Of a stretch of 64,000 nucleotides of DNA, positions 2,874 to 57,868 are shown piece by piece. Numbering within the stretch: the stretch's first letter is position 1; the number at the start of each line of letters is the position of its first letter. Source of the stretch: Eukaryota sp. TZLM1-RC (Eukaryota; Protista; Metamonada: BaSk clade); assembly GCA_040285825.1 (NCBI GenBank), contig JAUPSS010000002.1:2046001-2110000 (forward strand). Reading direction: 5' to 3'. A program made the translations under genes and the position numbers. The notes beneath the pieces are model-generated. The model made no database searches. It saw only the letters and a program-made list of their open reading frames with translations, and had not been told where the DNA came from.

Positions 2874-5216
2874 TTATACCAAAGCTCTTGTATCAAGGCA
2901 ACATTGTTTTCTTAAAGAAGCTTTGAGACAAATAAATACTACTAAAACAATAGTGGAAAAAACTAAAAATAATCTAAGAAATGATTGTTTCCCTATAGAA
3001 AAATCTTCAAAACTTGATGGAACATTGAAGTAATCATCTAAAAATTCTGAAACCAGTCTGACACTTTCTCTATTTGGTTCAGAACTCAGATCATCATTTA
3101 AACAAATAAACTTTGGTCTTCTTCTCCTTATTGAGTCCAATACCCTGGAAACTTCACCAGCATTGTCTGTTAGGGGATGGAAAGCGACATCATCCAAATC
3201 TTCAATAACAAATTGATATTTGTTTTTGGAAGTTTCAATTTCATTAAGGGTGTCAATAACTATGGTCAAGTGGGAAAATTTAAACCTTGATATTTTAAAC
3301 AAAGAAAAATCTAAAGGTTTGTAATTTTCGTCATGATGGGTGATTACGGAACCGGACAGTCCAAATTTGGAAAGTGCATTTAATTGACTGCCAGCTAGGT
3401 CAAAAAAGGATTCAGAATTTGTTGAATTTTGAACGTATTGCATTGGAGACATTGTTGTTTGTCCTGTTACAACTTTTTGTAACCAATCAATAGAGTTTTG
3501 ATTAACAGGATCAAATAAGTCTGCCAAAAGTCGTCTAGCTTCTATTCCGCTGATAAATCCATCACTGTTGACGTCATAAAGGTCAAAATAAAACTCCCAG
3601 GACTGGGGACTTCGCTTGACTTCCTGAAGGAATTGATAATACATTAATCCAAACTGAACATCATTTGAACTTCTAAATCTATTTTTTGAGGTGTTAAGAA
3701 AGTTTTCTTTAAATGTTTCAAAGCAATCTTGTAGGACAGGTAGTTGAATTAAATAAGGCATGTGGGCAGGTACTCGACGACCGACAGGGCCAAATTTTGA
3801 AGAAAGGATCATATCAACATGACGTAAAGAATCAGAATATGCATCGACTTCCTCTTCCTTTTCCTCAATGTCATCAGGAATATCATTGACTGGGTCATCA
3901 TTTTGAGCTTCATTTTGATCTTTTTGATCCATTTTTTGAGGTGTTTCATCTTCTTCGTTTATAACAACAATAATTTTCATTCCAAATAAAACATTGTCCT
4001 CATCAATTAACCGAATTTTGTGATCAAATTTAGTAACTTTGATATTACTTATAGAACTCAACTCTTTTAGAGCATTTGTTAGATGGTCTCTTGGTCTCAG
4101 AACAACATAAAGTTTTTGTTTTGAATGATTAAAGAAAACCTTCCAAATACAATTCAGAGAAAACTTCTGTTCATCTTCCACGGCAAAATCTATGGGTTTG
4201 TATTCTACTTCCACAAAGGAGTTATTAACTGAAACGTCGACAATCAAGCTCTTGTCGTCAATCAAAACTTCAATCACATCCCCATTTTGACCCTCTTGAC
4301 TGGCAACCTCATCATCACTACAGTCACCTCCATCAAACCCACATTCTTTATTATTACAATTAGTATCACACATCCCATCACCCACCCAATTAACAAAGCA
4401 ACCAGTTGAGCAATATTTTGCATTATTGGAGGTTTCTGACTGCCACGACCATGATGACGTTGCAGTTTCCGTTTCCACCCCTTCACAGTCACCTCCATCA
4501 AACCCACATTCTTTATTATTACACACTCCATCACATCTTCCGTCACCAATCCAAGCTGATGAACACCCTGGTGAGCATTCAGGGACAGGCCAGGTGGGGA
4601 AGACAGACTGGCCTCGAGGAGAGACTAAATCAAAAGGAGTGATTGGAGAACCTAGGAAGAAATCATCGTTGAAGTAAATAAAATGGTCAGACACACCAAG
4701 AGAGGAGAGTCTGTGGAACTGAGCCTCAATGGCCGGGGAAGAGAAAACAGGGAGGAAGGAGTGGAGAGAAGGGTCAAAAAGGTCCCTGTGGTCAATGACG
4801 GTCAACTTTGGATGACGTGTGTTAAGCCATGTGGGAATTTGCCTATCCGTGATTAAAAACACCTTACGAATCCAAGGTGCATAAAGCTCTAGAGAACGTA
4901 AAGAGTATTTGAGTTCATTGAATTCCCTGTACCTATTGTTTTCAATTGATTTTGTTGAAAACTTGGAGAGAGAAGACTGGAAGGAAGGATCGCTAGAGTT
5001 TACCCAGGTGTAAACTGCATCAATAACTGGAGCTTCGGTGTGAGGGTTGAAGGAAACTGGAGGAGTAGCTAGGTGTGTGGAGAAGTTTGCCATGTGCAGA
5101 AAAAGAGACACAACACTGAACAGGAAAAGAAAGCAGAAAAAAGCAAGGCCATAAGAGGTGTTGACAATGTTGAAGAGATGATGTCGTAAGACCTTTTGCA
5201 GTGAAGAGGACGACAT
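2874..5216 (-). CDS. Stealth-family GlcNAc-1-phosphotransferase alpha/beta-like protein (GNPTAB-like)
   Basis: Stealth CR1 IDAVYTWVN; CR2 ELKYSLRS..APWIR..FSSPAIE..YFNDD; two LNR/Notch repeats (C..GC...WxGDGxCD..CNNKECGFDGGDC); CR3 RRVPAHMP; EF-hand DVNSDGFIS; CR4 KFICLND; N- and C-terminal TM helices. Confidence 0.9.
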   Translation of the reverse strand: MSSSSLQKVLRHHLFNIVNTSYGLAFFCFLFLFSVVSLFLHMANFSTHLATPPVSFNPHTEAPVIDAVYTWVNSSDPSFQSSLSKFSTKSIENNRYREFNELKYSLRSLELYAPWIRKVFLITDRQIPTWLNTRHPKLTVIDHRDLFDPSLHSFLPVFSSPAIEAQFHRLSSLGVSDHFIYFNDDFFLGSPITPFDLVSPRGQSVFPTWPVPECSPGCSSAWIGDGRCDGVCNNKECGFDGGDCEGVETETATSSWSWQSETSNNAKYCSTGCFVNWVGDGMCDTNCNNKECGFDGGDCSDDEVASQEGQNGDVIEVLIDDKSLIVDVSVNNSFVEVEYKPIDFAVEDEQKFSLNCIWKVFFNHSKQKLYVVLRPRDHLTNALKELSSISNIKVTKFDHKIRLIDEDNVLFGMKIIVVINEEDETPQKMDQKDQNEAQNDDPVNDIPDDIEEKEEEVDAYSDSLRHVDMILSSKFGPVGRRVPAHMPYLIQLPVLQDCFETFKENFLNTSKNRFRSSNDVQFGLMYYQFLQEVKRSPQSWEFYFDLYDVNSDGFISGIEARRLLADLFDPVNQNSIDWLQKVVTGQTTMSPMQYVQNSTNSESFFDLAGSQLNALSKFGLSGSVITHHDENYKPLDFSLFKISRFKFSHLTIVIDTLNEIETSKNKYQFVIEDLDDVAFHPLTDNAGEVSRVLDSIRRRRPKFICLNDDLSSEPNRESVRLVSEFLDDYFNVPSSFEDFSIGKQSFLRLFLVFSTIVLVVFICLKASLRKQCCLDTRALV

Positions 5217-5270: not shown

Positions 5271-7373
5271 TACACGCTCAATTTTCGTGTGGAATAATTA
5301 CAAATACTATCTACCACACAAATACTGAGGCCTTTCATTACCACTCATTCTGGCTTCTGCAATTGCAAACATATTTAGACAAGCCAGCTTATTTCTATTG
5401 AAAAGCTTTGTTGAGCCTTTGTTACTGAGTTTGCAACTCTCACTGTTACAAGCTAATAAACCATGACATTTAGTAACAGGAGTCTTTGCTCTTCTGTAGA
5501 ATCTGGGATTTGTTACTCTCAAAAACGTAGCAACCTTTGCAAAACAAACAGGACATTTTGCTGAAGTGAAAGCTTCATTAATCATCAACACTTCAAATCC
5601 ATTTCTTTTCAGAAATTCAGTCCATCCAATGCCTCTAGTAGGTCTCTGATGTTTTAAATTCTTGGAAACTTTTTTTACCATAATCACCCATTAGTATTAA
5701 AGTGTCTTTTGGGTTGCCAGACTGCTGAACAAGGCTTTTTAACAACCAACTTTCAGTCTTTTGCTTGTGAATAAAAGCTTGCATTTTATGAATGCTCCAC
5801 AAGTCAAGACTGTAAAAGTCAATTGTCAAAAAAGCTTGCCGAAGTTTGGTAACCACAAAGTTTGAGAACTCTCTAAAAGTTGCTGAATTTGCAGCAAATG
5901 CGGATAATTGGGTGTGCATCTTCAATTGTCATTTCATTAGACTCTATCAATTAGTTCCTGTCGTAACCTACCTCAGTATACTTTGTCGCCCATCGTTTTT
6001 GCTTTTCAATCATCCTACTTTTCAAAGACTAGCACATCTGAGTCATTCTTAACCATTTGTACTTCTTGTCTTGATTCATGACCCGACTATTTCTTTGCTG
6101 TTCAGTTTCATCTTCAGGAACTATGGCTAATTCTTGATCCGTTTTTTTACTACCAAAATACAATAAATCACGTTTTCCAGGATCACAAACAACAATTAGT
6201 TTGTCTTGAAAAGCATCAACATCATCATCATCAAATATAAATCAGAAATACTAGCCTTGTTGTCTGGCTTACATTTCTGACCTTGTAAATCCCGATGAAC
6301 AAATTCTACTGCAATCTTAAATCCATCTGTGTGGATAATGTTGTTGAATTGATAGCTCTTTTGTTTGAACATTAATTGGTTTAAATCGATAAAATTAGAC
6401 CAAAATTCAAATTGCTCAGGTGGTTTGAATTTCGTAATTTGCGCTAGTGTATTGGACATTTTCGACGTCTGTGTAAATGATAAATCATCAATTAATGTTT
6501 GTTTAATTATTCTCCATATTGTTCTTGAATCAATAGGAAAATATCCAGGGCCTACAGTGGTTGAAACAGAAGAAATATGATAAGGTTTTCCCTCTCTACT
6601 GGAGATATATTGGGCGATTGTAATTGCTGGTTTTAGGAATATTTGAGGATCTTTTTCAACAGCGTCTGCAGGAAAGTGTATATCCACTGGAAATATGTTA
6701 TTAACTAAATTCTCGTCAGTGACCCTATTCTCAATTTGACAAATGAATGGCTCAATAAGACCTTCAAATATGTCTGTGAGTTCATTATTTCTTATATCAG
6801 GTTGTTCACATAAATCGAAAAATTCATCATTCAGAAGGTCTGAAATATTACCAGGATGATGAAACAAAGAACTCAAGCAATCTCTATCATAAACTAAAAA
6901 CAAGTTTTTGAATTGACGAAGCCTAAATCTATATAGTGAAATAATTGTAGATAATGGCGTCGAGTATCCACCCAGCTTGTGCATTTCTGCTAACATATTT
7001 TCCACATCTGGTTTGTCAAAATAAGCATTAATAAATCGATTAATATGTTTTTTATAATTTAGTTTCAAATTATTCTCAAAAATGGCAAACATTACTGGGG
7101 CCATTTACTTGGGTGGTTTACTGAAGCCATCAGTTGGAAATCGTGGAAACTGTTCAGGCTTGTGTCTTGAGTGATCAAGATAACTCAATGTTTTGTTTAA
7201 CTTTTGTTGCTCAAAGGTAGTTTTAAAAGTATAAACTCCTTCGTCATGTACAAAGTCTTCAAAATCCTGTGGAAATGCACTTTTTGGTTTCACCATTCTT
7301 TGCCCATAATACTCAGCTGAAATATAACGAATTCTGGCCATTAATGATTAATATAATTGGGCAATTATTCGTG
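5271..7373 (-). mobile_element. Fanzor (TnpB-like) element family A, copy 1, pseudogenised
   Basis: IHTDG, RuvC-I VVCDPG, LMGDYG, RuvC-II INEAFTS, zinc finger CPVC..CHGLLAC...C, RuvC-III-position NRN..ACLNM, terminal ERPQYL; near-identical inverted copy at 13277-15380. Confidence 0.88.
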
Positions 7374-22804: not shown

Positions 22805-25800
22805 TTGCTACCAACCCTTTTGGCAAAACATGTTTTAATAGAAATGCATTTATTAGTCAACAAAAAAAGTTTGTTGGCATCGATTGTTTTTGGTCGTGTC
22901 AAACACAAAGCTTCTAAATTTTTAAATCCTCATCAATTTGGAATAAAAACAATTGATGGTGCTTCTGTGGCTGCTCTTGCCTCTGATACTTTTTTAAATT
23001 CAGAGGATAATAATTTTCTTTTTGATCTCGACTTCAAAAATGCTTTTAATTCTGTGAAACGAAAAGCAATTTTTGATGTAATTAAATCTGATTTTCCTGA
23101 GCTTCCAATTTATTTCTATCACTTTTATGGTAAAGAATCAAATTTAATTTTTAATTCATTTGGTTTAAAATCATCTTCAAGTGAAAAACAAGGTGATTCT
23201 TCAGTTACTTTCTTGTTTTGTTTAGCTATTCACAAAATTTTAGATATCATTAAGCAAAAATATCCTTCCCTAAAAATAGTTGCTTTTATGGATGATATAT
23301 CCCTGATTGGTTCATTTGATTGACTACAATTGCTTGCTCAAGAAATTGCCGATTCATATGAAAATATTGGGCTTCATCTTAATGCGAGCAAATGCCTTCT
23401 GATTGGCTCTTCTGCTCAGGATCTTGTGATAAACGATTCTCTTGTCCCTTTTACTAACTATAGTAGTGATGCTTTTATAGTTTCTTGGTTGTTGGTTAGG
23501 AAATGTGCCTCAAATTCGGAATGAATTACAAGTTACTATGGAAAAAATGAAAATTGAACTTGATTCGATTTCTTTTTTATATTTAGAAAAACATATTGAA
23601 TTTTTTATACTTAAAATTTGCTATACTGGGAGAATAACCACATTTTGAGATTTTGTGCCCCTTCCATAGCATTAAATTTTTCTGTCGTTCCTTTAAGTCA
23701 TTGAGAACAGACTTTTTTTTCTGATTTATTGGATGTAGAAAGGAATGTTGAAAAGTCACTTATTTTCTTCAGCAAATTTGGGTGGTATTGGATTTACAAA
23801 ATCTTCTATTTGGTGTCAATCAGCATTTTTGGGTGGAGGCAAGAATTTTATTTACGAATTTTTTCGTAAATTTCCGGCAAATTCTCATTTATTAGTTCCC
23901 AGTTGCAGTCCATATTTGAATGGGTTATTTTGTGAACTCCATAGATTGCCGCCACAAATCTAGATCAAATGTTTTCCCCAATCAATTCAAGAAATTCCGA
24001 ACCAACCTCTTTTTAATTTGCAATTTTGCTGTAAAAAGCTTCAACAAAAATTGTCAAAGATTTTCGAAAACTTGGATTTTGATGTTAGACTTTTGCAAAT
24101 TTTTTACAAGATATGTGTGATAGTTCATCTTCTGCCTTAGTAACAACAACTCCTCAAGTTCATGGCACTCTCTTAACTGATTATGCCTGGCGTTGAATAT
24201 GAGATTTCGCTCCTTTATCTCGCCTGATAATTTACCTCATAATTTAATTTGTAAACTCGAAAAATTACAATTACTGATTTGTTAAATTGTAAACAATTTA
24301 TTACTTATAGAAGCAAGGTTCACGATGCTGTAAGAGACCAATTATATTATATGTGTAAGTCTAATAGAATTGAATCCTTTTTGGAACCTCTGTTGTCAAA
24401 TCTGTTTGATGCAGAAGATGATTTTCATAAGAATAATAGAGGTGATGTTATATTACCTGGATTAGATGGACTCTTCATTTTATTGGATGTAATGTCTATT
24501 GATCCTTGTAATGCCTCAAATGAAAGGCTTGCTAATTCTGAAATTCATAATCCTCTTTCAAATGCTGAAAATTTCAAAATCAAAAAATACAATGAACCTT
24601 TGTCCAAATTGTCCGGTCAACAGCATGCAAAATATAATTTGTATCCATTTGTATTTTGTCTATTTGGTTCACTTGCTCCAACGGCTATACGTAATTCATA
24701 ATACTTTCTCATCTGTGTTTTATTTGGCCCAATAACGTTCCTCATATTTTGGTTTGCGAATGTGGATCAAAAATGATCAATGATTTGTCCAAATCATTTG
24801 TTTAACTGTAAACATTTTATTACTTTTCGAACAAAAGTTTATGATGCAGTTAGAGATCAGTTTTATTGTATGTCAAAGTCTCACAAAATTGTCTCCTATT
24901 TGGAATCATTACTTTCTAGTTTGGTTGATGAGGACACTTTGAATTCTTTTGGTCGTAACAGAGGTGATTTAATGCTTGAAGGACTTGATGGGACCACTAT
25001 CATTACTGATGTGAGTTCAACTGATGTGGGTAATAATTCTTTCATACCATTAGCTCAGTCAAAACACAAGAATCCGCTGTGTGTTGCCGAAAATTCTAAA
25101 ATTGATAAATATAAAGCAAGGTTGGTTTCCTTGAATGCTGAATCTCACACTCATCATGTCCTTTGTCCATTTGCTTTTTCCTCACATGGTACGCTTGGAC
25201 CACTTGCTTTATCTTTTTTGGATGATTTTGTTCAAATTGTAAAACAACGTACAGGAAGAATCTTTGACAAAACGTTTTGGCAGAACAGAATTGTATTTTC
25301 AATTCTCAAAGGTGTTGTATCTTTATTATCCTCTGCTTTATTATCTCTTGGTCGCTTTTATGAAGGAAAAACTTCCAGTCAATTTTTGTTGACTGCTTTG
25401 GGATATGAAGATTTATAATTTTTATTTTTGTGTTTAGTTTTTTAAAAGTAATGATTTAAATTTAATTTTTTTAAAAGCTGAAAATTTCAAAATCAAAAAA
25501 TACAATGAACCTTTGTCCAAATTGTCCAGCCACTGCTTGCAAGGTACAATTTGTATCCATTTATATTTTCTCTATTTGGGTCACTTGCTCCCACGGCTAT
25601 ACGCCTTTTGGCAAATTTTGAAATGATTGTAAAGAGCAGAAAAAACAGAAATTTCAACAGATTGTTTTGGCAAAATAGAATTATGTTTATTATTTTTAAG
25701 GGGATGTTCAAGATGGTTTCTGCTGCTTTGCTTTCTCTTGGATTTCATTATGAGAGAGATCCATCTAGTTATTTTGTTTTGGGAGAGATGGATTATTTAG

Positions 25801-29338: not shown

Positions 29339-29467
29339 TCTTCTAGAATAAAGTAGAGGGTCGGAGTTTTTTTGTAAAAAGAGTTTCTTCAGGATCCTTC
29401 CTCTTAGCCTTCCTCAACCTTGCCTCTCTCTCCTATACTGTTTGAACACTTTCATTTACACGTGCTT
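29339..29467 (-). mobile_element. Decayed Fanzor-D 3' end abutting the Arl start codon (core internally deleted)
   Basis: aagcacgtgtaaat..agagaggcaaggttga..gaagaaactctt..aaaaaactccgaccctctac aligns with the Fanzor-D C-terminus and leader reconstructed at 36105-36880. Confidence 0.65.
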
Positions 29468-31409: not shown

Positions 31410-31476
31410 TCTGACAGATATTGTCTATAACAATGAAATAAGTGTCCTTTTTAGACCAATGTAGAGGGACTGAGTT
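31410..31476 (-). promoter_or_regulatory. Conserved 67-nt Fanzor-D right-end leader flush with the BBS4 ATG
   Basis: 59/67 ungapped identity to 36105-36171, including an identical 31-nt core taaaaaggacacttatttcattgttatagac. Confidence 0.85.
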
Positions 31477-31651
31477 TTTTACATCTGTGGTTTTCATTTG
31501 AAATGCATACTTTCATCAAGCATCATTCAAACTTATTCCAAGAACTTTCATTCTTGGTGAGATCGTCCACAGACGTTCTAGAATCCTCGAATAATTGGCC
31601 ACCAATCTCAGTGAGCCCATTTCTCCTCTAGAACAATACGTAGCTTTGAAG

Positions 31652-32798: not shown

Positions 32799-33636
32799 AC
32801 AATGGAATTAAAGTACTTTATTTATATTAAATAAAGTGACTAAAGTACTTTATCGCTTTGGTCATCCCTGATGGATGCTGTATAAAGTTTCTTCACCCCA
32901 AATTGAACCTCAAGAACAGTATATTCCTGACTTTGATATTAATCCTGATCAATCAAAGAAAAATCAGCCAACGTGCTCATTGAAGTAACGGATTTACAAT
33001 ATTTTTCTACAAACTTATATACTGTAATGAGCCATTCAAGAAGAACTAAAACAGTAAGTAACATTTAGGTACAATCAAGATCAAGGAAGAATTGAGTCAA
33101 AAAGTTTTAAAAGCAAAAGAATACGAGTTTATAGTCATAATGAGTTTCATGAAAGAACAATTAGGTCTTCTGAAAGGCTTATTGATCAATCCAACTGACA
33201 ATTTTCTGAAGTGCAACAAAATTGGATCGACCTAAATAGCAATATGTTTGATCAAAGTAATCAATAGACTATGGTCTATTGAAGTGAAGTTCCTCAAGAA
33301 ATTAATTACTCATTAAACATAATTAAAGCGTCAAACTACAACTGAATCAGAATGGGACACAACTTAATTCCACTTCGACTCCAAAATCAAAAAGTTCAAT
33401 ACATTAACCAAAAATTTTGTTTCATTATATCACCAGTGGTTTGGGACATACCACAAAAATATTATTCGAAATACTGAGATAATGTGTTGAATTCATTCAA
33501 AAAGTTTTAAGGAACGCTTGCATGTTGAGCAAGAATTTCATCCTCAAGACCTGGTTTCTCGACAGGAGGAATTTAGGCAATTTAAGGAGTTTTGTTCATT
33601 ATCCTAAGAACACTTGAAAAATTCCAAGGAATTTTG

Positions 33637-33683
33637 CATTGGTTCACGGAGAAACCATTCATTGTTAGACAATATCTATAGTG
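33637..33683 (+). promoter_or_regulatory. Degenerate Fanzor-D right-end leader flush with the dUTPase ATG
   Basis: cattggt...ttcattgt-tagac-aatatctatagtg-ATG; same 13-nt TAGAC-to-ATG spacing as the other copies. Confidence 0.7.
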
Positions 33684-34531: not shown

Positions 34532-36104
34532 TCAACACAACATATCAGGAGTCCTATTGACTGGACAAACAAGATTCATGTCCTTATATGGGCGAATAGA
34601 GTTGTAGAAAGGCCAGCTTTCAACAGGCATCCAATAATTACCCAACAATTGACAGATTGGATAATCCCCAAGACCACATTCAATTGGCTTGTCGTCCCAA
34701 GACTTTTTATAAATATCAAGCTGCATGACATCCTTAGGGGTAAACTCGGTAGCAACAATAGACTGGGCTACTCTGGGTTCGAAAACACCAGCTTCCCTTA
34801 GCATAGCAACAGCAAATGCTGAACAGATGAGTTCATTTTTTCCATTATAAAGCCATTCGTCCTTTTCGGGAATTGACATTAACTGTGCCCAATTCATTTT
34901 ACCTTGTTGGGCTAGATATTTGGTCACATCTTCTATTGAGTTGAGGTTATAATTATTCAAGCGATGGCGCATTCCTTCCAGAACGAGCACATCAATTTTG
35001 TCCTTGGCAAATGACTCTGCTAGTTTGAGTCCAGCTAATAGGAAATGCCAATCAATATTCTTGGGTAGAGTTTGAGTTTCAGTATCAAAGAAGGAAAAGA
35101 AAAAATTGTGATAACCATAAGGTTGGTGTTCACGAACCTTAAAGAAATTAAACGCCGCAGTATTGTTAAACTTCTTGGATAAATCATCTCTTAAAGGAAG
35201 AACAACAGCATTGGCATGCTTCTCCAGGGCCTTCCACTGTGCAAAAGGCAACGCAGTGATACCCTTTCGGAGAGTCGGAGAGGGATCAACATCCTGGAAG
35301 GGGGCATCATCTTGGCTTTCACTAATTAACAGCTCACCAGTAAAAGGATCGCGGATGACAATACAGACGTGGCCGGTAGCTGCTCCAGTGCTGCGGTAAG
35401 GAATGACCCGGATACAAACCCAAAGGAAATCATACTAGAGAGTCCAGTCATACTTGTAGTAATGATGATATCCCCAGGACGAAGGACTGAGGGATCGACA
35501 TCAAACTCCTGCTGTCTAGGAACAAAGTCAATATTGAGTGCTTCCTTGAAGAACTTGAGGTTCTCCTGCTCACTCTTCTTTCCCATGAACAGATGAATGG
35601 TGTGCCAGATGTCTTCGACTAAATGAATAAGATTGTCTTGGATGTGGAAAAGGTAGATACTTGAGTAAATAGTGAGATGTAGAAAACAAACCCATTTGCA
35701 ATAGCATCTTTGAACTGGTGGTCGTTCAGTTTGAAACTCCAATCATGTACACCATGACGGACCGCCGTCTTGACGTTGACAGAATTCATGGTGGCGATTA
35801 CATAAGAATCCATGCAGAAAAAACTATTGGGGTTGGAGGCATCAAGAGAAAGTGAAACATCTTTGTTCTTGTGATCGAAAAAAACGCTTACCGTGTTGTT
35901 CCTGAAACAATGAGCCTTGAAATGATGACGATAAGAAGGGCCGTGAGCTTGAGTAAAGTGGACCACCAACCGGGGAAGGAAATCGTAGTATTTAAGATCT
36001 GCAACAGAAGTACTTCCAACATTGGGGGGAGCAACTGCACCAGCAAGAATCATCATTACTGAGAGAATAACGACACATAGCGTGAATGACGATATAATCA
36101 CCAT
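34532..36104 (-). CDS. Secreted permuted papain-like (NlpC/P60, YaeF/YiiX-type) protein, ~503 aa, introns 35660-35691 and 35391-35419
   Basis: Signal peptide; 32- and 29-nt GT-AG introns join three ORFs; RPGDII, TGHVC, ISES, PYGY, ICSAF..EFTPKD with the permuted His-before-Cys order. Confidence 0.7.
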
Positions 36105-36172
36105 TATAACAGATGACGTCTATAACAATGAAATAAGTGTCCTTTTTACACCGATGTAGAGGAACTGAGTTA
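36105..36172 (-). promoter_or_regulatory. Fanzor-D right end/leader: from the reconstructed Fanzor stop (TAA 36172-36170) to the host ATG
   Basis: Joins in frame to the Fanzor C-terminus once the TSD-flanked insert 36208-36793 is removed. Confidence 0.85.
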
Positions 36173-36207
36173 TTGGGAAATGGAAGATTTTCTTCTGGAT
36201 ACTTTTT

Positions 36208-36793
36208 GTATTCATTTAATAAGGAATATGAAAACATACAATACACAACTAAAACTCCACATCCTCAAAATCTGCCTCCCCTACATCAAAACAATTAATT
36301 GCTAAAGATTCATAAAATTTGCCAAAAGAAGAGAGTGAATCAGAAACTAATTTTACCATTCCCTTAAAAATGGGACATACAATCCTGTCCTGCCAGTAAA
36401 ACGATTGAAAATTCTTCCAGTTCTTTCCTTTACAACTACAACAAAATCCTCAATGAAAGCCATAGCAGCCTTACCTAGAGATCCAAGCAACGAAAAAACA
36501 AAGGGATATAAATTATATTGGGCATGAGAATTTTTGTAGCGCGTACTATCAATAGTGGGGTCATTAAGAATTAATTTTGATAACAAAGGCTCTGAAAAGG
36601 AATCTACTCGATAAGATTTACACATTACATAAATTTGGTCCCTGACATTATTATCCACTTTACTTCTAAATGTAATGAAATGTTGACAGTTCAAAAGATG
36701 AGTAAACAAAAGAGGTTTACCACATTTACTTGTTAATTGATTGGGCAAATTGTTTGGCCATTGAAAACAACGAAAACGCATGTTTAAGAGCCA
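36208..36793 (-). mobile_element. 5'-truncated CRE-like retroposon with an ~18-bp target-site duplication
   Basis: WLLNMRFRCFQWP..HLLNC..FRSKV..VRDQ..YPFVFSLLGSLG; flanking direct repeats ttcttctggatacttttt (36190-36207) and ttcttcttgataccttttt (36794-36812). Confidence 0.8.
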
Positions 36794-37097
36794 TTCTTCT
36801 TGATACCTTTTTCTTTGAACCTTTGTCAATCTTGACTCTCTGCAGGTATTCCGGTCTTTCTCCACCATTTACATGTGCTTTCATCACTGCCAACATATTA
36901 AGCGAAGCATTTCGATCTCTATTCCACAAACTTTCGCATGATTTACATCGGAATGTTTCAACTGTTCTCTCCGCTTTCTTACAGTTGAAACAACAGCAAC
37001 TGGTTCGAAACTCATCAATCAAAAAGACCTTATAACCAGCCTTTTTAAATAGAATTCTCAACCCTTTTCCTTTGGTAGGTTCTTTGAATTTCACCAT
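36794..37097 (-). pseudogene. Fanzor family D C-terminal fragment
   Basis: KFKEPTKGKG, RuvC-II IDEFRTS, CFNC, CKSC, RuvC-III WNRDRNASLNM, ERPEYLQR. Confidence 0.88.
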
Positions 37098-39531
37098 GAG
37101 AGTTTAAGAGAAAACAAACCTTTGTATTTGGACTTTCTTACTCTGAATTTCACCTATCATGCATTATCCTGTGAAATTCACTCCTGTTTTCACCTTTCTC
37201 AATGTCTACTCACAGGCTGTAGGAGACATGTAGCGTCTTTCGATAAAGACAGTCATGATCTTCATCAATGGGCTACCTCACTTGAATACACCTACTGCTT
37301 TCACAGAACAAAGCCTTGCGACTTGATGTATCTAAGTGGATCTACCAAATGCTACTAGGGCATTTGTGGATCAGTCTCAAAAGGTTTTTATTTTCAAAAT
37401 AAAATAATAAACTCAAAATAAAATATCAGTTTTTCAAAAGTTTTTGTTTCTGTATGCTCAGGTTGCCCATTTATCTCCTCAACAGGTCTTCTGGGCAAAT
37501 GTATCGTTCCGGCCACAATTCCGCTTTCTTCTTAATTTGAATATTTTTTGCAGCGGAAATATCTCTGTCATTTACTATTTGACACTCAGTACAAATACGT
37601 ATCTGCCATGAGCCTGCTTGATATTCTCAGCCATGCAACAACTAGACAGTTTGCTTGTATTAAATTCACTGGTTGACAAGTGCTTCACGTCCTTTTGATA
37701 ACACAACCATTTTTTGAAAGCCCTTGCTGATCCATATCGATTGAGTTTTCGGCAATGAGAAGGGAAATTAGCAGAACCCACAGCAAGGTAGAGTTTTTCA
37801 GATTGTCAGTCAGCCTTTGAAACTTGTTGAGACTCTCTCTGAACCGTCTCTCTTTTCGTCTGCGTTTATCAAATTTAATTATTTTCCATTTCTGGCGATT
37901 ACTTTCCAAGTACACTTTCCTCCTGACCAAATTCCAATGGTTCAAATATTGGTTGAAATTTTGAACGGAATATTGGTTGGGAGAGTGTTTACTAGGTGAA
38001 GGTTTTGTCATGTATCTTCTGCCAGTTGGACAAGGAAAAATTCCACATTGATTATCATTTAAGAAGTAACCTCATAATCTAGATTGGCCCAGATCATTGC
38101 CAATAAGGGGCCTTTCACGTGAAATTTCGACTGAATATCTACGTCTTCGACGGGACATTCAATTAGTGCCCTTCAATTGTGTTTCTCTGGTTTTGTTGGC
38201 ATCAGGGTCACTTTTCATTTCTTTTTTTAATCTTCTTTTCTTTTTTAATGGTTCATTCAGCTCATTTGTGTTTTCTGAGTCATTATTTTTTCTTTGAAAT
38301 ATCAACAGCAGTTCATTACCATTAGTTTTCAATAAAAAAATTTTAAACCTATTTTTCAAACTTTTTTGTTGATATTAAGTTTTATTAGGTTTTTCATAAG
38401 GGCATTGTTTGAATATTCGTTTCAGACATGTATTTTTGACGAACTTTGTTTTGGAAGATGATCCTTCAATAAGGTGAACTTTTTTTCAAAAAGTGGAGAA
38501 CATGTGAAGGGACCTCAAGAAATTTAGAACATTTATAAGAAGCTGCAGCTAATAAGAAGCTGCAGAGGTATAATTCTACATTTGTTCCAGTAATGCATAT
38601 GAGAAACAAAAGTTAGTTAGTATTGTGAAATTTCCACATTAAAGAGAAAAAGCTCAAAAATTTCCTTCGATAAAAAGGTGATTCTATCACTTGAAGATAG
38701 TAAGTAAGCAGTGGTAAAAAATCTTTTAAAGATATTAACAATAAAATTACCTGCATTTAATAAACAGAATCTTTCTCTTGAATGATAAAGATGGAAATTG
38801 ATTTAGGGTTCGAGAAACAAAAGAATAACTACTTCTTTGAGTTGCTCCTCTTCTGTTATTTCACTAGCTTCTAGAGGTGCTAAGGGTTCATCTGGTATAA
38901 GAGAAAGAAGATAATTGGCAACGGCATTCTTTTTATCCAGTGCTCTACAATGAGCACTAATGAAGTTTCTTGTCCAGGATTGACAAATTTTAGGTAAACT
39001 TGTCTCAACATTAGATGCCAATTGACGAGCTCACAAGCAAGGTAAGGAGAAAGTACTTTTCTATTAATAAAATTGCGTTTCTGTGACTGCAGCCAATCAT
39101 TGAGAAAAATATAGAATGGATTTTTATAGGGAACTGGAGAATTTGCCCAAGTAGGAACGAGAACACCTGTCTTGTGGGGATTCAGGAAGGAATCCATTGT
39201 AAAAGATATGGAGTAATTGCCGTTGGCCTTTAGATGTGGAAGGCTTTGGAAAAAACAAGAAACAGTGGTGATGACGGTCATAAAAAGATACCATACATCC
39301 TGTTCCACTAAAGCTCTAGATGCCAACAGAAAATTCAGAAAAAAAGATTGAAGCAATAAAGAAGCTTCATGGCAAATCTCGGTGACCAAAGGAAGGTCAG
39401 CCCGAATTTGTTTCACTAAAGTAGGGGTCAGCAGCGAGTTAAGTGCACAAGACCGAGTGAATACACGTGACACAGCGGGGGTGTCTGACACGTAGTGAGA
39501 ATAAACAGCTCATCTCTCAAATTTTACACTT
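37098..39531 (-). mobile_element. Fanzor family B, near full length, decayed, with a hairpin-rich 3' region
   Basis: Left end shared with 7377; RuvC-I IGNDLG (~38090), WGSANF, RuvC-II SEFNTSK, CTEC..NDRDISAAKNI; stop at 37471-37473; the right boundary is approximate. Confidence 0.8.
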
Positions 39532-57165: not shown

Positions 57166-57798
57166 CTAACAATTCATTCTTAAATTACCGTTATCTGATG
57201 TAAAATCTGAAAGTTTATTCATTGAGAAAAAAATGTCTAAATCTTCATTATTTTCACTGAGTAGGAATTTAAACTCTGTATTAAGTAAGGAAACATCTTC
57301 AACGATGGCTTGAACCAGTGCCCGCTCTGTTGTAATGGATTTTGTAAAACTATTGCTGGTTGGTGGTGGGATTTTCTCAGAATGAGTGTGAGCAGTTTCG
57401 TTCTTAGGACCATAACAGCAAATATTTTCAATAGTGTAGGTCCTCCAAAGAGCACTCGATTGGCATGGGTAAAAGCGGAGTCCACCTACACTGGATACAT
57501 CAAAATCTGCATCCCACGAGGATGTTGACAATGAGTGTGATTGATGAGCATCGTCTTCGCAATGCGGACATTTCATAAGACGATGTTTGGAAAGCGCTAC
57601 TCGCCATGGACCACGTTTACCATCACCTTCCTCACCGTACGGACGCCACCATATAGTAATGTGTGATGAAAAATAATTGACAAAAGAAACAGAAGAAAGA
57701 TGTACTGGTGAGCTGAAGGAGATTTCGTGGAAAAAATGATGTGGCTGTTCAAAACTATCAGTTGATGGTGTAGAAATACATTGATAGTTGACTTCCAT
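57166..57798 (-). CDS. NICN1: Nicolin-1 homologue (tubulin polyglutamylase complex subunit)
   Basis: F.NY....I.I..R..W...L..H.LM..PH.EDDA..LR....Q.S.LW..Y.IE.I..Y matches the nicolin-1 pattern. Confidence 0.75.
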   Translation of the reverse strand: MEVNYQCISTPSTDSFEQPHHFFHEISFSSPVHLSSVSFVNYFSSHITIWWRPYGEEGDGKRGPWRVALSKHRLMKCPHCEDDAHQSHSLSTSSWDADFDVSSVGGLRFYPCQSSALWRTYTIENICCYGPKNETAHTHSEKIPPPTSNSFTKSITTERALVQAIVEDVSLLNTEFKFLLSENNEDLDIFFSMNKLSDFTSDNGNLRMNC

Positions 57799-57868
57799 TC
57801 TTAGAGATACTGTCTAAAACAAGGGAATAAGTGTCCTTTGCAATCCAAGATGTGAAGGGGATCAGTTA
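57799..57868 (-). promoter_or_regulatory. Fanzor-D right-end leader flush with the NICN1 ATG
   Basis: taactgatccccttcacatc..aaaggacacttattcccttgttttagac-agtatctctaaga-ATG; 13-nt spacing; preceded by a K-rich tail ending in TAA. Confidence 0.8.

Follow-up and report, generated by a model that had tools for sequence, protein, structure and literature searches.

The segment at positions 36105-37097 of the window (the whole 64,000-nucleotide stretch of DNA that was analysed) is very likely the decayed 3' end of a family-D Fanzor element whose right end adjoins, on the same strand, the native start codon of a host gene. The tail of this family stands at the ATG of 17 unrelated genes, and the identity between copies falls from ~85% in the tail to ~54% in a spacer of 4-5 nt and then to background. 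The source genome is GCA_040285825.1, which we take to be that of Skoliomonas litria TZLM1-RC.

Layout of the locus

The D tail, which is split by a retroposon, the leader that follows it and the downstream host gene all lie on the minus strand, in the following order:

Down to ~37472, with the 3' region reaching 37098, minus strand: decayed Fanzor "B"
36795-37097, minus strand: C-terminal relic of a family-D Fanzor ORF (101 codons), identified by a TNB match and by identity to D copies
36794-36811, minus strand: upstream copy of the target-site duplication, encoding KKVSRR, identified by repeat search; it maps to L008 6575-6592
36208-36793, minus strand: 5'-truncated 3' fragment (586 bp) of a retroposon, probably of the RLE-type non-LTR class, identified by repeat copies and C-terminal homology
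36190-36207, minus strand: downstream copy of the target-site duplication, encoding (Q)KVSRR, identified by repeat search
36146-36189, minus strand: last codons of the D ORF, namely KSSISQ, a private TAA (36170-36172), LSSSTSV and the family stop TAA (36146-36148)
36105-36145, minus strand: 41-nt 3' untranslated right end of D, with a small ATTGT/ACAAT hairpin, ...ATCTGT and the 4-nt spacer tata
35619-36104, minus strand: first open stretch of the host gene, with its ATG at 36102-36104

The retroposon and the host ATG are 103 nt apart. After the downstream repeat copy, 20 nt of reading frame end in the TAA at 36172-36170, and a leader of 65 nt then runs to the host ATG. The host gene product has a signal- or TM-like N-terminus, and a Pfam search with the stretch 35619-36104 gave no match.

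The leader is part of the Fanzor element

Removal of the insert together with one repeat copy restores the C-terminus that is typical of the family. The window translation reads ...WNRDRNASLNM...ERPEYLQRVKIDKGSKKKVSRR upstream of the insert (also noted there as ...KIDKGSKKKVSRR) and (K)VSRRKSSISQ followed by a stop downstream of it. Both window repeats map by BLAST to a single 18-nt segment (6575-6592) of the uninterrupted copy in L008, and the same segment is present once in the relic upstream of the Arl-like gene. Likewise, the uninterrupted family-D copies of this genome each contain the 18-mer once, and their C-termini read ...KGSKK(K/M)VSRRKSSTSQKLSPSTLV and stop; annotated proteins give ...KIDKGSKKMVSRRKSSTSQKLSPSTLV, ...KVDKGSKKKVSRRKSSTSQKLSPSTSV and so on, and the last codons in other D copies are KSSTSQKLSPSTLV and stop. 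Nine family-D copies share the same 3' flank up to a host ATG; the whole tail is present in L001, L004, L005, L006, L007, L012 and L008, and internal deletions are found in L002 and L003. In addition, three contigs from two samples of public sequencing runs (the public data being three low-coverage DNA contig sets with no RNA run) join 36794 straight to the leader via 15 nt, of which 12-13 are identical to the window sequence aatcttccatttccc.

The TAA at 36170-36172 proved to be a copy-specific change (AAA>TAA), as all other copies have AAA (Lys) at this position. The family ORF continues for 8 codons (KLSPSTLV) past it, to the TAA at 36146-36148, from which 41 nt remain to the host ATG; in L001, L004 and L005, too, 41 nt separate the D stop from the ATG of the next gene. 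Because the window TAA is private, the first 27 nt of the "leader" are Fanzor coding sequence (the last 8 codons and the stop). The leader shared by these genes thus consists of family-D sequence throughout: 8 terminal codons with their stop, then 41 nt of untranslated right end.

These results bear on an earlier note, made from the sequence alone. Its claim that an ~18-bp direct repeat flanks 36208-36793 held, with 16/18 identity and a single copy in uninterrupted D, and so did the claim that deletion rejoins WNRDRNASLNM...ERPEYLQRVKIDKGSKKKVSRR to KSSISQ-TAA, on both the window sequence and the uninterrupted D copies. The host ATG does lie 65 nt after this TAA, and 41 nt after the family stop. 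What failed was the placing of the leader's beginning directly after the TAA, since the family ORF runs 8 codons further and the TAA is private; this correction strengthens the Fanzor reading. The central claim, that the leader is a Fanzor right end and not merely a host promoter, held (27 nt are D coding sequence, and the uninterrupted copies agree). Uninterrupted D copies with a different C-terminus or 3' flank would have refuted it, and the check for such copies came out in favour of the claim.

A later retroposon insertion splits the D tail

The repeat copies at 36190-36207 and 36794-36811 align without gaps, and they are the only pair of repeats of at least 18 nt within 35900-37400. The insert between them (36208-36793) is repeated DNA: it shows 82% identity to positions 3-266, at the very start of the window, and further copies lie in L005 (5372-5623, 93% identical) and L004 (6372-6642, 80%). 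It is more distantly related to retroposon C-terminal ORFs at 24271-25722 of the window. Its ORF tail ends at the stop codon 36353-36355, which is followed by a 145-nt 3' UTR. The encoded tail has 35% amino-acid identity to the window ORF 24279-24701 with a 58-residue gap, and ~58 residues that would hold the RLE core are absent from the insert. RVT_1 was matched at 4.8e-10 in window 22805-23323, upstream of the C-terminal ORFs related to the insert; the criterion of a reverse transcriptase is therefore met via a related window copy, and the insert itself holds the C-terminal tail only. The insert contains a C...C-x7-H-x3-C motif, and its relatives at 24279-24701 and 24780-25418 show RGD...D...K..KY, read by eye. 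Pfam and PDB searches with the retroposon C-terminal ORFs gave no matches, and the class rests on the reverse transcriptase match and on motifs read by eye. Because the copies are repeated and the tail is homologous to an ORF downstream of the RVT_1 ORF, we assign the insert to a non-LTR family of the RLE type, which likely encodes a reverse transcriptase followed by a CCHC-like motif and a restriction-enzyme-like C-terminal domain.

In contigs of the public runs, full-length retroposon copies continue past 36796, so the region of 36796 is the 5' truncation point of the insert, and the criterion of a 5' truncation combined with a target-site duplication is met. The 3' end of other retroposon copies reads ...TGAATAAAAAAAG. 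The aaaaag that opens the downstream repeat may be the retroposon's own A-rich 3' end, and the true duplication is therefore put at 13-19 bp. Taken together, a 586 bp retroposon fragment was inserted 12 codons before the premature stop of the window copy (20 before the family stop), later than the D element itself and with a duplication as in target-primed reverse transcription.

The earlier note had called the insert a CRE fragment. The retroposon part of this claim held (RLE-type non-LTR); membership of CRE was not established. Copies were seen at unrelated sites, namely in the Fanzor tail (window), next to the gene for a subunit of RNA polymerase I (L004) and in a spacer without annotation (L005), so that the criterion of site-specific insertion into spliced-leader genes is not met and the clade label is unsupported. 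The insert family resembles the R2/CRE/NeSL group in having a reverse transcriptase, then what looks by eye like a CCHC motif and a PD-(D/E)xK-type C-terminal domain, and in its 5'-truncated copies with target-site duplications; it differs in occupying unrelated sites rather than spliced-leader or rDNA genes, and the inserted copy lacks the endonuclease-like core.

Two further observations concern this retroposon. In run X1 and in run X3, one contig agrees with the window as far as 36216 and then departs from it; the departing part resembles a divergent retroposon 3' UTR, and it may be that another D copy carries its own related retroposon at this site. Moreover, the deleted retroposon type (without the ~58 residues) has the highest contig depth of the region in the low-coverage runs, and it is possible that it forms a successful deleted, non-autonomous subfamily, with the caveat that depth is not copy number.

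Family D as a Fanzor

The TNB domain (PF07282, Cas12f1-like) was matched at 9.7e-11 on window 36726-37097 and at 1.5e-06 on the annotated protein P0151. The window fragment is 75-89% identical to P0001, P0151, P0153, P0156 and P0159. A profile-free search of 1.8 billion proteins with the 101-residue D fragment returned P0001 at 82% identity, and a second protein search found at least 11 annotated D ORF fragments in GCA_040285825.1 at 80-91% identity. The RuvC-III NRD motif is present and invariant (W58, N59 and D61 in the alignment); the RuvC-I and RuvC-II parts are missing from the window, and elsewhere only decayed frames of them were found. With P0002, the nearest full-length relative, as the query, only metagenomic proteins were found, at 41-51% identity to P0002.

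Fuller D copies carry the exonuclease domain of a family-B DNA polymerase upstream of the Fanzor part (L006:774-1154 and L004:1528-2322; DNA_pol_B_exo1 at 5.5e-10 in L006). Family D is multicopy with a right boundary that is defined at 17 junctions, all copies seen are dead, and no intact copy, left end or transposase was found among the D loci examined. Nor did these loci reveal an omegaRNA or a TAM. Left ends at L008 4753 and L004 1552 were considered and rejected as truncation points, because other copies extend further upstream; as only L006 extends to the exonuclease ExoI region, no left boundary of D was set. The NPGP (2A) motif is absent from every D locus fetched. The fold of the D tail was no better than that of shuffled sequence (z = 0.36), and the consensus fold of the tail in an alignment was weak (-10.7 kcal/mol).

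The window relic has suffered a 5' cut, the loss of 21 codons, the premature stop and the retroposon. Homology to D spans 36794-37093, and the lost codons (WCRNPRPWKRHEMSIRHGLTM) belong to the zinc-finger region and are present in other copies. At the 5' cut, the 3' region of Fanzor B meets the dead D at ...ctctcATGG, directly followed by TGAAATTC (37093-37100), whereas other D copies read ACA(T/A)GAAATTC here; the ATG at this junction is therefore inside a dead element. This ATG (37097-37095) is not a working start codon, and D homology begins at 37093. The D sequence that would lie upstream of the junction (37093-37100) was found nowhere in the window. Relatives of the B 3' region (L007, L009) diverge before its end, and no junction was obtained from them.

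Right ends at the start codons of 17 unrelated genes

We aligned 17 right-end junctions: nine of family D (L001-L008 and L012), two in L009, one D-like junction on the opposite strand of L006 and five in the window (36105, 31410, 29339, 57799 and 33683, with the corresponding ATGs at 36102, 31407, 29336, 57796 and 33684). All of them consist of a conserved end, ...(TA)GACAATATCTGT, a spacer of 4-5 nt and an ATG. Averaged over pairs, identity is 0.84 for the dead coding tail and 0.87 for the 3' untranslated end, drops to 0.54 across the spacer and reaches background (0.24) beyond the ATG. For D, the term right end holds insofar as similarity among the copies ceases at the ATG. The docked genes are unrelated to one another and encode BBS4, galactokinase, ENY2, a RING-HSP70 protein, an SGF29-type Tudor protein, a SPRY protein, two WD40 proteins, a TPH-domain protein, dUTPase and an Arl-like GTPase. 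Besides the retroposon-split copy, the window contains the following right-end relics:

31410-31479, minus strand: D right-end relic (KLSPSTLV and stop, then the 41-nt end) directly before the BBS4 start, 89% identical to 36105-36172
29339-29467, minus strand: relic of a D tail, older and ~73% identical, whose end (...ctctactttattctagaaga ATG) is shortened; the Arl-like GTPase gene follows
57799-57868, minus strand: D-like right-end relic before the gene at 57166-57798
33640-33683, plus strand: D-like right-end relic before the dUTPase ATG (33684)

The earlier note had also claimed that the ~130 nt upstream of the Arl gene align with the reconstructed tail. This held: 29339-29467 aligned with the joined D tail across the junction with a score of 53, against 17.3 +/- 2.3 (maximum 30) for 1000 shuffles. 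A relic of the D body, 68% identical, accompanies the right-end relic before the dUTPase gene, at 32991-33306. Another Fanzor's 3' region comes to 70 nt from the BBS4 ATG, and the Arl relic, L002 and L003 show internal deletions. Nearly all of the 1.39-kb spacer that separates two divergent genes in L001 is taken up by the D relic.

A purine (A or G) follows the ATG at 17/17 junctions, compared with 13 of 24 other sampled gene starts; this background sample is small and includes transposon ORFs. The spacer is AAGA at six junctions, including the oldest relics, TTCA at four and AGTG at two. AAGA was found at 0/24 control starts, and all four TTCA junctions continue with ATGA.

Other observations were made around these junctions. 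Two older D-like relics (68-75%) on the minus strand, L009:9715-10115 and L006:4753-5797, end at the starts of WD40 genes with the spacer AAGA. At L006:3449-3574, the ATG after one D right end opens an ORF of only 41 codons, and a convergent WD40 gene comes next; possible explanations are a small gene that the annotation misses, a gene that has died and docking at an ATG that is not a start. Upstream of the BBS4 leader, the stretch at window 31481-31520 (...gaaagtatgcatttcaaatgaaaaccacaga) recurs at L009:3990-4030 and is likely a right end from a further repeat family; its junction with the D tail reads ...cacagATGt, joined to aaaaaactcag. We did not rely on an extended D homology upstream of the BBS4 leader: its score of 31 was reached by 3/500 shuffles, and it was discounted because it overlaps the segment also present in L009.

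The docked start codons are native

The docked ATGs are the genes' own start codons, as shown for BBS4 by its orthologues and for galactokinase by its signature. In the sister strains GEM-RC1 and TZLM3-RCL, BBS4 has an equivalent start codon and its upstream DNA has no similarity to D or the leader; at this one orthologous locus, the D leader is thus absent from two relatives. The galactokinase signature falls at residues 10-38 only if translation begins at the docked ATG. The GenBank model of this gene begins 30 codons late, at 3611, and the signature needs the ATG at 3521 (L012). In other GenBank models, the dead D tail and the host protein are joined into one product, as in P0057 (with ENY2), P0073 (with the RING-HSP70 protein) and P0154, whose model reads through the leader. 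The following models are chimeric or mis-started because of the D tail:

L002:4001-4525
L003:4001-6179
L012:3001-3570
L012:3611-4831

Alternative explanations

Two alternatives to the history set out above were weighed. The 18-nt repeat could have arisen by chance or from recombination between two D relics, in which case the 586-bp segment would not be a simple insertion. In favour of this, the repeat copies differ at 2/18 positions and the aaaaag on the 3' side may be the A-rich end of the retroposon. However, both repeats correspond to a single segment, which every uninterrupted D copy has only once and across which the D sequence continues exactly; each repeat copy is one private change away from the family state (the Arl relic has ...GGATCC..., the upstream repeat of the window has C>A and the downstream repeat has lost one G); and the 5' edge of the insert is the point at which full-length retroposon copies run on. 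This alternative is all but ruled out. A host promoter or 5'-leader motif common to many genes, to which D is merely adjacent or was attracted, or which it captured once, is a second possibility. A core of ~20 nt (cattgttatagacaatatct) does precede several ATGs, and upstream of some of these cores (57805-57824 and 33660-33679) hardly any Fanzor coding sequence, or none, can be recognised; moreover, metamonad promoters are short and near the ATG. Against it, the leader opens with 27 nt that form the conserved end of the D frame (KLSPSTLV and stop), D stop and ATG lie exactly 41 nt apart in L001, L004 and L005, the motif is absent at 24 other sampled gene starts (a D-like tail was otherwise found only at L006 3730-4752), the leader is absent at BBS4 in the sister strains, and identity in the leader follows identity in the dead coding tail. 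We therefore consider a host motif very unlikely.

A further alternative agrees with our main reading on the identity of the leader and differs on how it came to lie at start codons. Here the placement is not aimed: insertion takes place at any ATG-purine, or through a microhomology join, and selection keeps the copies at start codons, as the genome is compact and the right end can replace a promoter. The purine after the ATG (17/17 junctions against 13/24 sampled starts), the meeting of the B 3' region with dead D at a non-functional ATG (37095-37097) and the D end that precedes a 41-codon ORF (L006) all speak for it, and the one-orientation insertion of Rep-type elements at 2-4-nt targets with 'fuzzy' right ends (PMC10288648) fits the half-conserved spacer. 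On the other hand, the background sample is small and contains transposon ORFs, D was not found together with an HUH or any other transposase, and the spacer pattern could reflect subfamilies. The balance tips against this alternative, though only slightly. The ATG-purine, the spacer pattern and the B/D junction favour a sequence-directed, orientation-specific join at ATG-purine that is filtered by selection; tethering to the transcription start complex remains possible and is not excluded.

A proposed mechanism and its limits

Under our preferred reading, that of a D right end docked at native start codons, we infer that D would integrate in a fixed orientation immediately 5' of an ATG-purine and would displace the host gene's own upstream region. 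The last 20-70 nt of D may then serve as the core promoter and leader of the docked gene, an inference for which there are no RNA data; such a role would explain the survival of this end through nested insertions and 5' deletions, and the near-complete filling of the L001 spacer by the D relic also points to it. By analogy with TnpB and Fanzor systems, an omegaRNA scaffold may extend over the end of the D ORF and the right end, with the first bases of the host gene as the guide, a prediction to which folding gives no support. Counting against a promoter role, conservation of the leader hardly exceeds that of the dead coding tail (0.87 versus 0.84), so there is no clear sign of selection on the leader. 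Moreover, the window has two nested cases, and neither retains the portion of D that should lie upstream of the newer element, contrary to what plain insertion would lead one to expect.

A bolder reading, which we regard as no more than possible, is that D and other Skoliomonas Fanzor families integrate at start codons via an ATG-purine core and swap the promoter. The host promoter and ATG would then drive the element's long exonuclease-Fanzor frame, the right end would provide a replacement promoter and leader, and the omegaRNA guide would always start with the host start codon.

Comparison with known systems

Family D resembles Fanzor1 and TnpB (SpuFz1 and ISDra2 TnpB) in its TnpB-type C-terminal zinc-finger/TNB domain and its NRD RuvC-III motif. 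Characterised Fanzors have an omegaRNA at the transposon end that can overlap the stop codon (PMC10432273), and the nuclease ORF of D likewise ends tens of bases from the right end, which in characterised elements is the omegaRNA site, with the flank as guide (PMC10432273). In contrast to these systems, fuller D copies carry a PolB-type exonuclease domain and the copies seen are all dead, and no described element has been reported to end at host start codons. A search of the full-text literature turned up no paper connecting start codons with Fanzor or TnpB elements, and the Skoliomonas genome paper contains no transposon analysis.

Rep-type transposons insert in one orientation beside a 2-4-nt target, and their right ends may carry bases of the parent flank (PMC10288648). 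D is like Rep/HUH elements (Helitron, IS91 and Replitron; PMC10288648) in its orientation-specific insertion beside a 2-4-nt target, its subterminal 3' hairpin and its 'fuzzy' right ends, and some Helitrons carry Fanzor genes; however, neither a Rep gene nor a CTRR end nor an A/T or TT target was seen in D, so the resemblance is one of behaviour only. Ty3 and other start-site-tethered retrotransposons integrate, as is inferred for D, with base precision by the start of unrelated genes. Ty3 is an LTR retrotransposon that reaches Pol III genes via TFIIIB, whereas D is a DNA element at Pol II start codons with the upstream region replaced, as we infer. In bacterial IS elements with outward promoters, terminal DNA drives the neighbouring gene, as we propose for D; their distance to the gene is variable, whereas the D junction is fixed at the start codon and its promoter activity is only inferred.

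Implications

Fanzors are the eukaryotic relatives of TnpB and Cas12, and next to nothing is known of how they choose targets or affect their hosts. The retroposon-split copy acts as a natural control in that it shows the leader and the nuclease C-terminus to be one piece of DNA. The right end of D lies at the start codons of at least 17 unrelated genes, the conserved genes BBS4, galactokinase, ENY2 and dUTPase among them, so that, as we infer, transposon DNA has replaced their upstream regions. Fanzor ends at start codons are unusual and, as far as the literature was searched, undescribed. If the aiming is indeed sequence- or transcription-directed, it would be a placement rule not yet described for OMEGA-type elements, and, if this holds true, the acquisition of promoters by compact protist genomes would become directly testable.
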